This document shows positions 14,752-32,166 of a DNA stretch of 64,000 nucleotides, piece after piece. The notes below the pieces were generated by a model. It searched no databases, had not been told where the DNA came from, and saw only the letters and a program-made list of their open reading frames with translations. The stretch comes from Hyaloraphidium curvatum SAG 235-1 (lineage: Eukaryota; Fungi; Monoblepharomycota): NCBI GenBank assembly GCA_025558095.1, contig JAIVFI010000006.1, positions 62,001 through 126,000 on the forward strand, read 5' to 3'. Within the stretch, counting starts at the first letter, position 1. Each line of letters begins with the position of its first letter. Made by a program: the position numbers and the translations under genes.

Positions 14752-17700
14752 TCACGGAACGAAGCAGGTGAATGTTATAGAGAGGTGCTTAGTGCTCCCC
14801 GGGCATCCGTCGGGCAGACCGATCGACGTGACATCGCACGTGTTTCTCCCGCTGCACGACGCAAAGTTATTGCGGTAAGCCAAGGCGTTTGGATCCGGCG
14901 CGCAAGGGCGCATGGGACCGACGCGGCACTTCTGATCGCCCGCCGAGCCCGGGTAACGACCAAACTGCGCGGGGCGAAGACGTCAGCACTGGGGATGGAA
15001 GGCGGCGGCGGGCGACCCACGATAGCCTGAACAATCGAAATGGCCTGTCCGGCGGGGCAGCGGAGGGTTTCGGTCCGGCTGCCGCCTTCCGCGTCGCATA
15101 TGTGCACCTCGGCTGGCGGTGTCGTCGAGATCTGCTCAAACCGTTTCGGGTATCCGGCGATGAAGTTGTTTGTCTGGACGGTGTAGACGTTCGGGAGCCG
15201 CACGGCCTCGCAGGTTCCCATCATGCACATCCCATCCCATCCATTGCCAGCTGGGATGACCCAATTGATTGCCTTAGTGACGGTTCATCAGCCCTCTCCA
15301 CGTCTGTGTGCGCCTGCGGACTCACCCTGCACTTGACCGGACCGCCGTTGTTGTTGAAAGCGAGGCAAAGCTGCGAGCAAGCCTCGTAGCTTGACGTGCG
15401 CCCCAGGTTGAAGCATTGGCCGCATGCGCAGGTGCCAAACCTGTTCCCAGTGCCTGCGATTCCCCGTCAGACATGGAGACAAAGCCGGAAGACCAGAAAC
15501 GGTGGGACGCTTACCGGCAAATACGTATGGGAACCAGTGCAATTCCATGCGCTGGCCCCTTCCGTCGACGGCACCAGGGTTCAGTCGGACAAACTCGTCC
15601 TTGTACTTCTTGTAGCCGCTCATGTGAACGTTCGGGCTGCTCTGCAGCGTATGGTCATAGCGCCATTTGCCGTTGCTGACCGTTTCCAGGTCGGCCGCAC
15701 GGCCCTGGCAGTTGAGGCTCCACCCGCCGTTGCCCTGGGGCACCCAAGTGTACGCCCAGCAGACCGGATCCGCCTCGCAAAGGGCGCGGCAGCCCTCTTC
15801 AGAGGTTTGGGTTCCGTACTGCGCGGAGAACAGCAGTTGAGCCAGGAAAAACAAGAAAGACGGGGAAGGGAACCCACGTTCATGACGCCCCTCTGCCCCT
15901 CCCAAACCTTCATGTCATTCGGTGCGCCGAACAGATACGCCGTCAAGCACCATCCGGGCATCAGCGTCCACCCGTCGAAGCCGCTGGGCGGAGCCGGCGG
16001 GAAAGCCCTGGCGAAGTCCGTGGCCCACTGCTGCACCTGGTCTCTCAACCCGGGGGCGAGGAGCCGGTGCACGGGCACGAACGCATCCAGGGAGGTCACC
16101 GCCCAACGCAGAGGGCTGTCGTCCACTGACCGCGCCCAGTCGGCGAAACCGGCGAGATTGCCCGAGGCGTCGATGGCGCCCGAGACCAGGGACGATGTCC
16201 CACCGACGGCGGTCCAGCGGCTGTTCTGCAAGTAGCTTGAGCTGGCACTCGAAGTGCTGCTCGAAGATCCGGTGGTGACGCCGACGCGAGCGCTGACCCT
16301 ACCGAGGGTGACTCCGACCTCGGCCGAGATCTGCCTCGAGACGGAGCTGTCCGTGGTGGAGGCCGAAGTCGACAGGGCGAAGCTGGTGGTGAGCTTGCCG
16401 CCGAGTTCGACCCTGGTGGGGAAAGCATGTCCCCAGTTGTCCTGGAGGGCCATGTACTGCCTGAACTTTTCGACGTTGCTGATCCCCTGGTTGCGGATGC
16501 CCTCCACGTCCCTAACAAAGGCAGGGTTCACGACAAACGCGGAGCTGGCCGAGGCCGGATCCAGCTGGAGCACCAGGCGCTTGAGCCTCCAGTTCGCAAC
16601 CGCGCGGGTGGTGGAGCTCGATGAGCTCTGAGAGGAACTCTGCGAGAGCGAGACGCCGACGCTGGCGTCCACGAAGCCGTACGAGGCGCTGACCCTGACG
16701 TCGACGAAGCCCGCCTGCGCCGCGGACGCCTGCGACTCGGAGAATGTGACGCTGGCGTCCGCTTCCGAGGTCCGGAAGGAGCTGAAGTCCGGATCGGGAA
16801 AGTCGCCGCCGGAGTTTTTGGGCACCAGGATCGCCCTCGACTGCCCGATCGACTGCTGCGGGGTGTTCCTCGACATGACCCACCTTTGGGAGAGCGGATC
16901 AGACCAAAGGCAGTGGAACCATAGCGCGGCAAAATACCCACGCGTTGAGGATAGAGTTGCGCCTGAAGAGCTGCTCCCACTGCTTTCCGCAAAGGTCCGA
17001 GGCCGACTCGGGTGCATCCGGGCATTCCGGCACCGGGGGCGGCGGCGGCGGCGGCGGGGGCGGAGGTGGCACCACCGGCGCCGGCGGAGGAGGAGGAGGA
17101 GGCGGGGGCGGTGGTGGAGGTGGAGGCGGCGGTGGCCGACCCGGGGGCGGGGGAGGCGGGGGAGGAGGAGCAGGCGGCCTGGAGTTCGGATCCCGTATAG
17201 GGGCCTGCATGGTGGTCGCCTCGATGGTGGTGCGGCCGGCGGAAAAGGTGATGACGAAGAACCGCCCGAACATGCTGCTGTCGATCGGGATGCGGTGTGT
17301 GAAGCGGTACCCCCGCGTGGGACTGCCCGTCCCCTGGCAGACCGCGTGGATGTTCGGGGCGTCGTTGGACGGCATGTTCGCATCCGTGGTATAGATGGGC
17401 CTCGCGTCGGCCATGCCGGCGAAGGCGGCCTTGGTGCCGTACGTGACCTTGACGAGGCCGGGCGTGGGACCGTTGGTGCAGGCCCAGCCGTTGACGTAGA
17501 TTTGCGCGCCGTCCTGGACCAGGTCGTCGACGTTGCCGCGCGGCTGCCTGTTCTCCAAGCTCCTGAGGACCGCGGATCCCTGCCCCGTGTAGCCGTTGGC
17601 CTTGAGCAGCTCCCGCTTGCCCGCCTGCATGGCCGACACCACCGACTCGCGCGGATCCAGAGCATAGACAAACACCTCGACCTCGTTCTTGCCGGCGTCC

Positions 17701-23800: not shown

Positions 23801-26639
23801 CGTGACCTTGACCAGCCCCGGAGTTGGCCCGTTGGTGCAGGCCCAGCCCCTGACGTAAAGCTCGGAGCCGTCCTGGGTCACCTCGTCGATAACGCCGCGC
23901 GGCTGCCTGTTTTCCAAGCTCTTGATGACCACGGATCCCTGGCCACCGTGACCGCCGGCCTTGAGCAGCGCCCGCTTGCCCGTCTGCATGGCCGACACCA
24001 CCGACTCGCGCGGATCCAGGGCGTACACGAAGAGCTCCACCTCATTCTTGCCGGCGTCCGAAAAGAGCTTCGACACCGTGTCTGACGGCAGCTGCGCCGA
24101 GAACCACGCCGAGACGGCCGAGTTGCCGCACAGCTTGTGGATCTCGGCCTCGGCCTTTGCGTCCGGGTTCCTCGTCGACGTCACGGCGTTGGCGAGGAAG
24201 GCCGTTGCCTGCGCCGACGCCTGCACCCAGACCGTCACGGCGCTCGAGGATCCCGTCAGGCACGCCCAGCCGTCCACGCGCCCCGCGGCGTCGTCGACCA
24301 GGGTCCCCGTGATGGCGCCCACCAGCTTGGCGGGCGCCTGCTCGATCTGAATCCGCTGGACGACGTCCTTCGGCTTCTGCACGGGCGGCGGGCTCGTGCT
24401 GCAACGGTACCAGATGCGCAGATAGGGCTTGCCGAGATCGCACTCGGGCGGCTCGCCCGGAGACGCGGCCTGCGCGGGGTTGAGCGTGACGGCGCAGTGG
24501 ACCTTGCCCTGGCACTGGGCCTGCACCGCCGGCAGAGCCGAGTTGTCCCTCCCGCACACGGGCTCCGAGGTCCCTTCCCCCGCACCTTTGCCGGGGCACA
24601 GTTCGGCCGATCCCGGGTGCCGCCCCAGCGTCGCTCGGTCGATGGCCAGGCTCGTCCCGGGGCACTCGAGCTTGATGTCGAAGCTCCCCTTGCGGTTCGG
24701 GCACAGCGTGGCCACCCTCGCCGTGCTGGGATTGTTGCCCACGCGGGACCTGCACGTGTAGGCCACTTCGAGGTATCCTTTCATGCCCGCGCAGCTGCGC
24801 GTCGAGGGAACGAGCTCGCGTACGCCGGCTTTGCATGTCTTGAGCCCGTGGCACGCGCCCCGCACCCGCGTGAGGACGGTCGCGGCCTCGTCGGCGCCGA
24901 TGGAGCACTGCGGTACGTTGGCGACGGGGAGGCGGCGGAAAGTTGCGAGGGCGGAAAAGTCGGCGGGAGGCGCCTCTTGCTCCTGCTCTTCCTCTTGCTC
25001 TTCCTCCCCGTCCCCTGAGCCATCTTCGTCCCCGCCGTTCTCGTCCGTTTCCTCATCCTCGTCGGCTGCTTCCTCGTCCGAGGCCTCTTCTTCCGAGGCC
25101 TCTTCTTCCGAGGCCTCTTCTTCCGAGGCCTCTTCTTCCGAGGCTTCATCATCCCCTTCTGCAAAGGCATGCCTTCCATGAGCAAACGAACCCGAACGTT
25201 CGCGACCACGCACCTTCGTCAGTCGTTTCTTCCTCCTCGCCAACCTCTTCCTCCACCTCTTCCTCCTCATCCTCGCTGTCCTCGGGTGGGGGAGGCCTGC
25301 CCTTGACCGTCTTCTTGACGCTCTTGGTCTTGCGCCTCACGAGCCTCTTCATCTCCATCCGCCGTGGCATCATGTGCCTCGGCATTATGCGCCTCGGCAT
25401 TATGCGCCTCGGCATCAACCGCCTCGCCCGGATCGCCCTCCTCCGCTCCTCCACCTCGGCCGCATCGCACTTGTCGCTGTACTTGCCCGTCCCGTAGACG
25501 ATCGACGCGATCTCCATGAACCCGTCGTCCTCGCACCCGATGGAGAGGTACCCGTTGTCGGAGCAGGTGATGGAGGTGTAGAACCTGACGTCCGGCATGC
25601 CCCTGACGCCTTTGGGGGTCGGCATCGGCGCGATGAGGGAGGGCAGCAGCTCGGCGCCGTGCCCCTCTCCGGCGTCGTCGTCGCCCTCGGATCCCGAATC
25701 GCCGCCTTTGCCCTCCCCGCCCTCGTCGCCACCCGTGTCCCCGTCATCGCCTCCGTCTTCCTCGGCTCCGCCTTCCTCGCCTCCGGCTTCCCCGCCTTGG
25801 CCTTTCTCGCCTCCGCCTTCCTCGCCGCCGGCTTCTCCATCCCCCCCTTCGTCATCCCCGCCTTCGTCATCCCCGCCGCCCTCGTCGCCCCCCAGCGGAT
25901 GGAAATCAGGCACCGGTTCAGGCGGCGGCGGTGGCGGTGGGATGAGCACCCCCGAAGTGCCGCCCATGGGCATGGTGGGGAACGTGGTCCCGGTCCCGCC
26001 GCCGACCAATATGGGGCCGCCGGTCCCCATCGGACCGCCGGGGAACATCTGGCCACCGGGCTGCTGGGAGCCGCCGGGCGTCTGGCCGGATTGCTTGTCG
26101 GGAATCTTGTTGTCCTTCTTGGGGTCGACGGTGTTGGTCTTCTTCGTGTCCGTGGGGTCCTTCTGCATGTGCTTTGGCGGCGGGGGTGGTGGGGGAGCCT
26201 GCTTCGGCGGAGGCGGGGGAGGCGGAGCCTGCTTGGGCGGAGGCGGGGGAGGAGGGGGAGCCTGCTTCGGAGGTGGGGGAGGTGGGGGCCTCGGGGCCGG
26301 AGGTGGAGGTGGAGGAGGTGGAGGAGGAGGGGGGGGAGGCCTCGGAGGCGGGGGTGGGGGCGGGGGTGGTCGGGGCGGGGGTGGCGGAGGTGGGGGTGGC
26401 CGAGGGGGCGGCGGCGGGGGCGGCCTGGGCGGCGGCCTCGGTGGAGGTGGCGGGGGCGGCCGTGCGCCGCCGGGCTTCCCACCGCCTCGACGGCGGCCGA
26501 GGCGGTTCTCCGCTCCCGACGCGTTGCCCGCGGCCATCCGCCGATCGGGCGCGTCCGCTACCGCGAGCCGCGCCAGGGCGGTAATCGCGATGACGAACAA
26601 CGCCGCGAGCAGCCATGCGGCCCGCGTCCGGGCCGCCAT
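20823..26639 (-). CDS. Secreted multidomain lectin-MACPF protein, copy B (tandem paralogue of copy A)
   Basis: Same domain order and intron positions as copy A. Signal peptide MAARTRAAWLLAALFVIAITALARLAVA, MACPF NWGHVFPTKVELGGKL, ends KHLSITYTCYVP*. Confidence 0.88.
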
Positions 26640-26806
26640 CGCGTCCAATCTCGTGGCCGTTCTCTTCGGTGCTGGACCCGTCGATGCCTCGCTGCCTTAC
26701 CTGACCCGGTGGCTGGTGCGTGGGCTGTCCAGATGTCACGGCGATCGGGGAAAAGATTGGCTTCAGGTAAGCCAAAAAACGCAACACTGCATCGGAAAGG
26801 CTCAAG

Positions 26807-26963
26807 CGTACACCATCTCCGAGTTTTGCCTGCGGATAAGTGGGGAACGCGCGTCCAGACAAAGGCGGAGCAGCAGCCCACCATCGATCCACCCACCAAA
26901 CCGTCTGGAACACCGTCTCTCGCCCCTTCGCCGAAGCCAAGGCAACGATTCCCACTAGCTTTC
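26807..26963. promoter_or_regulatory. Conserved upstream block of lectin-MACPF copy B
   Basis: Paralogous to 20224-20377. Confidence 0.5.
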
Positions 26964-26964
26964 C

Positions 26965-28500
26965 CCGCCCGCCCGCCCGTACGGGCTCCGCCCTCGCCTT
27001 GGCCAGCGCCGCTTCCTCCTGCTTCGCGGTCCCGACCTTGCCACGGCGCATGAGAGCCTCGAAGGCGTCAATTGCCGGGCCGGCATCGGGATCGTGGGAG
27101 AGGGCTTCGCTCCTGAACATCCACATCGGCTCCCTGCAGAAGGGCACACCTGTCACTAATCCACCCGCGAGCGATTACGTCTGCGCAACCGCAACCCACC
27201 ACTCGTGCACCACGAGATACTCGCCCCCCTCCCACCTTCCAGATACGAAGCACGAGAACTTCCAGAGGCCCATCGACTTGCCCAGCAGGATCTCGCCGTG
27301 CTCCCGGAGGCCCGCGGGCACAGGCTCCCACGTGTTACGCCAGGAGACGGTGAACAGGCCGTCCTCGTCCTCGGATAGTATCTCGGCCACCTGCAGAAGC
27401 AAACACATCAGGCGATTCCCCCTCAGCTCCGAAAGAACCGGCAAGCAGACGAACCTTTGTGTTGCCCCCGGCCACGGCCTCCTCCTCCTGCCTTTTGACG
27501 TGTGGCCCCCGCGCCGCGCCGTCTTCGCCATCCTGCTCGCGATCCTGGAACTTCTGCACCTTGGTGTAGGCCGACGGGTCGATGGCCAGCAGCTCCGCCA
27601 TCCCGTGCGTGGAATCCGCCCTGGCGACCAGGTCAGCCCGGCCGGATCAACCCCGCGGACCCGGGAAAGCACACCATTCGACCTCGTGGTGGAACACTTT
27701 CCACTCCCCAACTTTGATCCACGACCTCCGACGATCCGTGCGAGCTTCAGGGGGTTTCTGGCTTTGCGGCGGGGTGCGGGCCGCGGGGTCGGGGAGGCGA
27801 GCGGGTGCTTCGGCTTCGGCGGGGGCTGCTGGGACCTGCTGCGGGATTTGGGCGGAGCCGGAGTCGGGCTCCGAAGGGGCAGCTTGACCACGAGGCTCGA
27901 GGCGCGGTCGAGGGGTTTGCGCGGCGCACGATCGGGGGCGTCGCTGGCGCGGCGGGGCCGCTTGGTCTCCCTCTCTTCCTCGAGGGCGTCCAGGAGGAGC
28001 TTCTTGACCTTGCCCGACGGTTCCGCGGGGAGCTCGAGGGGCGTTTCCTCGGGGATCGGCCCGCGTGCGCGGCCGTCGAACGACACCCGGCGTGCATCGT
28101 GAGCAAGCGCGAGCTCGTGCGGTAGATGGCCCTCCTCCTCGTCCTCTCCGGATTCCGACGCCGTCGACTTGGCAATCGGCGAGAGCAGCCCCGCGTCTTC
28201 GGGCTCAGGCGCTGCCGCGGGCACCTGCCCAGCCGGCGGCTTCTTGCCTTCTCGACCTCCCTCCGCCACCGGGGCCGGGGTCTTCCGCGGCCTGCCCCTC
28301 TTCTTCTTCTCGATCACGATCTCGGACTCCTGCACCGCCGCGCCCACCTGCTTGCCGCCGCCGCGGAGCCACTCCGCCTTGGCCGCCGCGATGCGGAACA
28401 TCGCCGCGCGCTCGGCGGGCGCGAGGTGGCCCAGCGAGCCGTCCATGGCGGCCGGTGCAAAGACCGCCGTGTCGATGCCGTCAAAGAGGCTGGCGGACAT
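26965..28500 (-). pseudogene. AT-hook protein with chromo-like segments, possibly disrupted
   Basis: KKKRGRPRK AT-hook. Chromo-like pieces KVFHHEVEWADST and VAEILSEDEDGLFTVSWRNTWEP. Needs an apparent frameshift near 27730 and has no nearby stop before the MACPF-B upstream block. Confidence 0.4.
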
Positions 28501-31824: not shown

Positions 31825-32166
31825 CCTGGCCGCCAAACGGGCACCCTCCGCTGCCCTGCGGGACAGGCCATCTCCATCGTCCAGGCTCTGGTGGGTTCTT
31901 GTCCGCTGCCGTGCGGGCCCGGGGTTCTGATCCGCTTGGGATCCGCCGTGCAGTACGGCCGGTACCCGGGCTCGTCGGGCGACCAAACATGCCGCGCCGG
32001 TCCCATGCGCCCTTGCGCGCCGGATCCCGTCGGTTATGCTTACCGCAATAACTTTGCGTATTGCAGTGGGAGAAACACCTGCGAGGTGAAGACGGAGGGG
32101 CTGCTCGACACTTGCCAGGGTTCCACCAAGCACCTGTCCATCACGTATACCTGCTACGTTCCGTGA
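31825..32166 (+). pseudogene. Inverted orphan copy of the last two exons (C-terminal SUEL lectin) of the lectin-MACPF genes
   Basis: GTLRCPAGQAISIVQAL [intron] YGRYPGSSGDQTC..KHLSITYTCYVP*, with the intron in the same position as in copies A and B. In-frame TGA at 31795 and no ATG or signal peptide upstream. Confidence 0.8.

Follow-up and report, generated by a model that had tools for sequence, protein, structure and literature searches.

In pore-forming proteins of the MACPF family, targeting depends on the attached binding module, and the fungal members that have been studied use a separate, lipid-reading aegerolysin. Lectin-bearing pore formers of other families combine carbohydrate recognition and a beta-barrel module in one chain, i.e., lectinolysin (a cholesterol-dependent cytolysin with a fucose lectin), CEL-III, natterin/Dln1 and the Vibrio cholerae cytolysin. 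Here, we describe two tandem genes, called A and B, in a window of 64,000 nucleotides (the whole stretch of DNA analyzed) from contig JAIVFI010000006.1 of the fungus Hyaloraphidium curvatum SAG 235-1, which combine three SUEL lectin modules, two repeats resembling immunoglobulin (Ig) or fibronectin type III (FN3) domains, two PAN/apple-like modules and a MACPF domain. The pore or lectin folds of the families named above differ, and we know of none with the domain order of A and B. We consider it probable that A and B encode secreted, glycan-aimed, single-chain MACPF pore formers serving antagonism, whose secretion, sugar binding, pore formation, target and ecological role we infer. In perivitellin-2 (PV2) of Pomacea apple-snail eggs, which serves defense, a lectin is known to bring a MACPF pore former to glycosylated targets (PMC3667788, PMC7082926). 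The principle proposed for A and B is the same. However, PV2 is an animal protein made of two disulfide-joined gene products with a tachylectin-type lectin, whereas A and B would each be one polypeptide with three SUEL and other binding modules. The initial annotation did not recognize this architecture from fungal MACPFs, and a literature search found no paper with SUEL (or rhamnose-binding lectin, or Gal_Lectin) and MACPF in title or abstract, nor one pairing Hyaloraphidium with MACPF; six papers contain SUEL and MACPF elsewhere in their text. It is the architecture that looks new, not the principle (PMC3667788).

In the proposed mechanism, an N-terminal signal peptide would export the protein from the cell, and the three SUEL, two Ig/FN3-like and two PAN/apple-like modules would attach it to glycans or glycoproteins on the surface of another cell, with long poly-proline rods keeping the binding modules apart. 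The pleurotolysin-B-like MACPF domain would then oligomerize, and two Ser/Thr-rich amphipathic segments would unfurl into beta-hairpins to form a beta-barrel pore. The built-in lectins would replace the separate membrane-binding partner (aegerolysin) of the best-studied fungal MACPFs. Antagonism would be the likely use, either as defense against grazers or as attack on neighboring freshwater microbes.

The window is GC-rich throughout (64-75%), and its six-frame lists of open reading frames (ORFs) are crowded with spurious frames. In a Pfam scan of the longest ORFs, MACPF and SUEL lectin matches were confined to the minus strand, on which all features given below lie unless stated otherwise. 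A and B were delimited by reading the three minus-strand frames and each putative junction, and Pfam and profile searches were performed exon by exon. The two genes are head-to-tail paralogs with an identical 7-exon structure and intact frames. Gene A (14752-20057) extends from the ATG at 20057 to the stop codon at 14754-14752, and its exons (20057-18740, 18679-16942, 16883-15878, 15818-15515, 15453-15326, 15272-15021 and 14964-14752) sum to about 1,652 amino acids (aa). Gene B (20823-26639) extends from the ATG at 26639 to the stop codon at 20825-20823, and its exons (26639-25214, 25158-23022, 22963-21955, 21896-21593, 21529-21402, 21342-21091 and 21035-20823) sum to about 1,822 aa. These values agree with the roughly 1,650 and 1,800 aa given in the initial annotation, whose outer limits, 14752 and 26639, are exactly the last base of the gene A stop codon and the A of the gene B ATG. 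Each gene has six introns of 53-63 nucleotides (nt), all GT..AG and mostly with a CTGAC-like branch site, at positions that match between A and B. Intron 1 has 60 nt in gene A (18680-18739) and is read through in frame; in gene B it has 55 nt, which explains the frame change observed there. Introns 2 and 6 of gene A lie at 16884-16941 (58 nt) and 14965-15020. Where blastn aligns them, A and B are 79-83% identical in DNA sequence, and the surplus length of gene B sits in longer poly-proline and acidic tracts. In every exon, synonymous divergence (dS) between A and B is about 0.5-0.8 and the ratio of nonsynonymous to synonymous divergence (dN/dS) is 0.10-0.34 (Nei-Gojobori, per exon). Hence, both copies of the tandem pair have long been retained by purifying selection.

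The MACPF domain is encoded by exon 3 (15878-16883, 335 aa, in gene A; 21955-22963 in gene B). The Pfam family MACPF (PF01823) matched with 40.3 bits in A and 45.2 bits in B against a cut-off of 21.5, with the same result from a six-frame genome search. MACPF_1 (PF22693), a fungal MACPF-like family, matched with 41.6 bits in A and with 27.5 bits in B, the latter being exactly at the cut-off of 27.5. Both copies contain the signature W-G-H-x-F-x6-G-G (residues 150-162 of the gene A exon), in which Gly-Gly and the aromatic residues are kept. The strongest beta-periodic hydrophobic moments were found at exon residues 60-80 and 181-205 in both copies, flanking the signature, and Ser and Thr together make up 35-47% of these two amphipathic segments compared to 22-23% overall. 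The segments coincide with the places of the transmembrane hairpins TMH1 and TMH2 in the structural model described below (TMH1-like, about 47-92; TMH2-like, about 172-222 of the gene A exon). A MACPF domain with a WGHxF motif and two Ser-rich alternating segments, as read in the initial annotation, is therefore present in both copies, with Pfam scores over or at the cut-off.

As a stand-in for the fold, we modeled the paralog P0002, a naturally spliced GenBank protein from another contig of the same organism (C42) with 71% identity to the gene A MACPF exon, using a 41-row alignment that included the exons of the window. The model has a mean pLDDT (predicted local distance difference test) of 69 with a high-confidence core. 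The MACPF fold comprises a bent central beta-sheet with two helical clusters (TMH1 and TMH2) at its flanks; in the model, residues 19-32, 76-92, 139-158 and 247-256 form long strands, separated by clusters that are helical or of low confidence. The model matched more than 30 MACPF chains with a Foldseek probability of 1.00, including pleurotolysin B, Mpf2Ba1, GNIP1Aa, Plu-MACPF, MPEG-1, TgPLP1, perforin and C6-C9. The MACPF fold at about 16050-16880, on which the initial annotation had staked its reading beforehand, was thus found on this 71%-identical paralog. Pleurotolysin B (OlyA-PlyB; PDB 4oej, 4v2t, 9do6) is the nearest solved relative both by fold (4oej, E 1.2e-10) and in a search of PDB sequences with the MACPF exon (E 8e-4), which also found TgPLP1 weakly. 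Both pleurotolysin B and the proteins described here match MACPF_1, and in each of them hairpins would arise by refolding of two helical clusters. However, sequence identity is only about 20%, and PlyB has about 500 aa and relies on a separate aegerolysin for membrane binding, whereas the chains of A and B carry their own lectin, Ig-like and PAN-like modules. The insecticidal proteins Mpf2Ba1 and GNIP1Aa and Plu-MACPF of Photorhabdus, all high among the fold matches, resemble A and B in that a single chain combines the MACPF with a receptor-binding beta domain at the C-terminus. In contrast to A and B, they are bacterial and have just one small C-terminal domain, without SUEL, Ig-like or PAN modules and without poly-proline rods.

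The SUEL_Lectin family (PF02140) matched exon 2 with 53.0 bits in A and 50.9 bits in B against a cut-off of 31.4, in two stretches each. One of them, SUEL2 (18039-18350 in A; 24398-24712 in B), is a complete domain which in gene A covers Pfam positions 1-80 over the cut-off. The other belongs to SUEL1 (18387-19073 in A), where a putative N-half (18957-19073) is separated from the C-half (18387-18548) by a large charged insertion, first basic and then acidic, which houses intron 1. The C-half matches Pfam SUEL positions 34-80. For the N-half, no Pfam match was obtained even at E 10, and hhalign against the SUEL2 profile gave a probability under 1%; there is a Cys and YG pattern alone, which is not significant. 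The C-terminal SUEL3 (14755-15101 in A; 20826-21171 in B) gives a partial Pfam match in exon 7, since intron 6 splits the domain. In the spliced paralog P0002, SUEL3 covers SUEL positions 1-80 with 21.9 bits, under the same cut-off, and the C-terminus of the P0002 model matches the lectin domain of latrophilin LAT-1 (Foldseek). Of the lectin order SUEL, SUEL ... SUEL proposed initially, SUEL2 and the C-half of SUEL1 hold by Pfam and SUEL3 in part, whereas the N-half of SUEL1 does not.

SUEL lectins are typified by an eight-cysteine framework and by the sugar-site motifs YGR and DPC/KYL (PMC3269628). Counted on the translation, each of the three SUEL modules of gene A has 8 Cys. The motifs of SUEL3 are near-canonical (FGR in A or YGR in B, then DxC and KHL), while those of SUEL2 read LGR, PEC and PYL, and those of SUEL1 YGS or YGT, SC and GYL. 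Besides the cysteine framework, the Pfam family, the LAT-1 fold match and the YGR-like and DxC...KxL-like motifs of SUEL3 are shared with known SUEL/rhamnose-binding lectins such as the sea-urchin egg lectin, fish rhamnose-binding lectins and latrophilin. However, in the literature consulted these appear as free lectins or receptor ectodomains, and in A and B the motifs of SUEL1 and SUEL2 are degenerate and SUEL1 is interrupted. A stand-alone ORF of 91 aa resembling SUEL3 lies about 5 kb beyond gene B on the opposite strand (31891-32166, plus strand); it is 62% identical to residues 538-621 of P0002 and runs straight through the place of intron 6 of A and B. Its sequence suggests an intron-less partial copy.

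The two Ig/FN3-like beta-sandwich repeats (17193-17972 in A, about 130 aa each; 23555-24373 in B) are mutually homologous (pairwise E 4e-7) and were modeled by AlphaFold as two beta-sandwiches (8-row alignment, pLDDT 82). Foldseek matched the model to tandem Ig chains (single-chain antibody fragment, two Ig domains), though at low TM-scores of 0.21-0.28 and a root-mean-square deviation of 11-20 Å; against FN3 and Ig domains, VIA-align gave Z 7-8, which is the tool's range for a common arrangement. Judging from the model, the label "Ig-like" is fair for these repeats, and nothing more specific. The two Ig-like repeats of the initial annotation are therefore retained, both by their mutual homology and by their folding as Ig/FN3-like sandwiches.

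Two PAN-like modules had been proposed as well. Module 1 is encoded by exon 4 (15515-15818 in A; 21593-21896 in B), which scored 22.1 (A) and 22.5 bits (B) for PAN_4 (PF14295; cut-off 27) and 16.3 (A) and 15.7 bits (B) for PAN_1 (PF00024; cut-off 21.4). The Pfam cut-offs are thus missed in A and B, and the PAN_1 cut-off is passed by the paralog P0002 only (23.5 bits). Nevertheless, a family profile of module 1 gave weak but consistent matches to the apple domains of factor XI, kallikrein, MIC4 and MIC5 (E 0.1-0.3). The Cys-rich module 2 (exon 5 and the first part of exon 6; 15138-15453 in A, 21208-21529 in B) gave no PAN/apple match in a profile search of PDB, where one unrelated chain was found at E 0.47. 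It is linked to PAN clusters by language-model features only, with a score of 0.85 (measured on P0002), and in the P0002 model module 2 has the order strand-helix-strand-strand. "PAN-like" is a fair label for these modules, with PAN membership itself unproven.

Direct reading of the translations gave, as first proposed, a signal-peptide-like N-terminus in both genes (19968-20057 in A; 26550-26639 in B), in gene A with a basic n-region, about 14 hydrophobic residues and an Ala-rich c-region. The RR-ending propeptide that had been postulated in addition is not supported: RRR is conserved in A and B only and is absent from the ortholog in another organism (locus L001, see below). Poly-proline tract 1 covers about 60 aa in gene A (19698-19877) and about 95 aa in gene B (26175-26462). 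Tract 2, the linker before the MACPF domain, covers about 50 aa in gene A (17028-17180) and about 140 aa, including a short Cys-containing island, in gene B (23108-23539). This island in the middle of the tract, with about 19 non-proline residues, two Cys and two Trp (23213-23269), occurs in gene B only and has no counterpart in gene A. A further-reaching idea, which we put forward as a rather doubtful speculation, is that the rods before the MACPF domain (about 50 residues in A and 140 in B) set the reach of the MACPF and lectin heads from the producing cell or the bound glycan, and that paralogs with different rods and diverged lectins co-assemble into mixed pores. If true, this would be combinatorial glycan-addressed killing by one small planktonic fungus, directed against grazers, algae or bacteria, and a fungal counterpart of complement-like heteromeric MACPF assembly.

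Gene A is transcribed. Contigs of a public run (X1, recorded as RNA only by guess) are without introns and show the joints 14964/15021, 15271/15325, 15452/15514 and 15818/15878 on gene A, which correspond to introns 6, 5, 4 and 3. Further X1 pieces lie on exons 1 and 2, and the pieces overall span exons 1-7. In a freshwater poly-A metatranscriptome (run X2), three short contigs (14745-14904, 17180-17296 and 18919-19161) matched gene A with 0-3 differences. Judging from these matches, gene A seems to be expressed in nature by H. curvatum or a very close relative.

The lectin-to-MACPF splice (intron 2) is not bridged by the X1 contigs: on the MACPF side they reach 16868, 15 nt into the exon, and on the lectin side they begin again at 17180. 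The gap at 16869-17179 holds intron 2 and the poly-proline linker. This gap, together with the GenBank model KAI9002494.1 of the C42 paralog, which starts within the MACPF exon, would fit a locus made of two genes, one for a secreted lectin/Ig-like protein and the other for a MACPF-PAN-SUEL protein, forming a two-component system like aegerolysin/pleurotolysin B or the two chains of PV2. We regard such an arrangement as highly improbable. The contigs are cut at a skipped poly-proline repeat (17025-17179), and in A, B, the C42 paralog and locus L001 alike, exon 2 can be read without a stop across the proline tract until a canonical donor is reached. When exon 3 is read by itself in A and B, Met first appears at residue 3 and nothing after it looks like a signal peptide, so that a separate MACPF product would not be secreted. 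Further, a Cys-x-Cys/QW/NSILN segment which ends at the intron 2 donor (16942-17027 in gene A) is conserved in B, C42 and L001, and in the GenBank paralog KAI9027744.1 (P0005, 1,390 aa), which also contains SUEL domains, this segment is contiguous with the MACPF N-terminus. Based on the open frame, the conserved junction segment and the KAI9027744.1 model, we read the lectin half and the MACPF domain as one chain. Accordingly, the single multi-lectin MACPF chain of the initial annotation stands in its architecture, while for its lectin-MACPF splice, unbridged by RNA contigs, we argue from the reading frame, from conservation and from a paralog's GenBank model.

At the C42 locus itself (L002; C42:101276-105021), the sequence directly upstream of the start of KAI9002494.1 (621 aa) contains, in frame, exons for the lectin, Ig-like and junction parts with 70-83% identity to gene A. 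By comparison with these exons, the deposited model looks truncated.

When the MACPF exon was compared with each of 1.84 billion representative proteins, four matches were close; the next ones, at about 30% identity, were among fungal MACPF_1 proteins. Three of the four (P0002, P0004 and P0005) are GenBank proteins of H. curvatum deposited as hypothetical proteins, and other contigs of the 31.9-Mb H. curvatum assembly match P0002 and P0005 with 100% identity. The fourth belongs to locus L001, which lies on a 10.8-kb contig with 56% GC from another organism and shares the domain order of A and B. The H. curvatum assembly contains at least seven lectin-MACPF loci, i.e., A, B, one each on contigs C42, C37 and C16, and two on C8, and the position of the lectin-MACPF intron is common to at least five further H. 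curvatum loci and L001. In a maximum-likelihood tree, A and B are sisters (support 99/97), joined by C42 and then by L001, while the other H. curvatum copies lie outside (supports 82-89). According to this branching, the family predates the split from L001, and A, B and C42 are later duplications. A word-indexed protein search with the lectin/Ig region gave a single match (P0001), and none of 143 pattern matches in JGI metagenome contigs was confirmed as a relative. In the sequences searched, the lectin-MACPF family is found almost only in H. curvatum. One of the nearest MACPF_1 matches outside the family, P0012, is labeled as a bacterial metagenome-assembled genome (Actinomycetospora sp.) and groups with metagenomic proteins in the tree; this label could reflect gene transfer or a binning error. 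A search for aegerolysin (PF06355) gave no match in the 31.9-Mb assembly, but control genomes were equally silent and the absence is therefore unproven.

The expansion of the family in the Hyaloraphidium lineage could also be seen in another light. Hyaloraphidium multiplies by autospores within the mother wall, and TgPLP1 is among both the fold and the sequence matches. The proteins could form pores in membranes or envelopes of the fungus itself, for instance in the release of autospores from the mother cell, comparable to egress by the apicomplexan PLP1. We consider this improbable, since at least seven diverged paralogs and a lectin array suit variable foreign targets better than one self target, and both signal peptide and lectins point outward.

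Several points weigh against the proposed glycan-aimed pore formers as a whole. Many MACPF proteins are non-lytic. The MACPF signature is Y/W-G-T/S-H-F/Y-x6-G-G, and that of A and B is a variant without the usual Ser/Thr before His. The fold model, with its mean pLDDT of 69, is of a paralog and is poor in the TMH tips, and the X1 contigs leave the splice at intron 2 unbridged, as described above. The poly-proline tracts could also be the mark of a structural glycoprotein bound to the wall. Finally, the sugar-site motifs (PMC3269628) are degenerate in SUEL1 and SUEL2 and near-canonical only in SUEL3, and sugar binding by the SUEL modules may, judging from these residues, be reduced or altered.

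A and B could therefore be non-lytic MACPF proteins, i.e., wall-associated or adhesive glycoproteins that build or sense the cell surface, with the MACPF domain used for recognition, signaling or development. Torso-like, the astrotactins and plant CAD1 are such non-lytic MACPF proteins. The great length of their poly-proline, acidic and Gly-rich tracts is reminiscent of wall glycoproteins, and SUEL is a widespread building block in the H. curvatum genome (28 or more six-frame matches, spread over about 20 loci, mostly not beside MACPF). The partly degenerate sugar-site motifs also fit, and the surroundings lack a toxin-like partner or cluster, the identified neighbors being BTB/BACK and SET-domain genes unrelated to lectin-MACPF. 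However, the TMH1-like and TMH2-like segments keep a clear alternating amphipathic pattern which is conserved between the copies, the nearest solved relatives (pleurotolysin B, Mpf2Ba1 and GNIP1Aa) are true pore formers, and the protein ends in a lectin domain, with no C-terminal anchor signal. Weighing both sides, we find a non-lytic role unlikely, though it deserves to be taken seriously, and we retain the secreted, glycan-aimed pore former as the probable function of A and B.

Upstream of both ATGs (about 20100-20300 and 26700-26900, minus strand), the translations are alike between the genes, which suggests that the duplicated unit takes in a 5′ leader or promoter. The blastn DNA alignment of A and B extends no further than about 50 nt before either ATG. 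On the plus strand, long ORFs overlapping the genes (e.g., 18255-20195 and 25374-27053) gave no Pfam match and were taken as antisense artifacts of the 67% GC content.

A fungal MACPF protein with three SUEL, Ig-like and apple-like modules in one chain would be glycan-addressed and would provide a modular example of swappable targeting. Since SUEL3 and the halves reaching from the MACPF domain to the C-terminus are small enough for expression, this claim is directly testable. The host is an early-diverging, almost unstudied freshwater fungus (Monoblepharidomycetes) whose way of life is unclear. Taken together, the copy number (at least seven), transcription and purifying selection suggest an important role of antagonism in H. 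curvatum.

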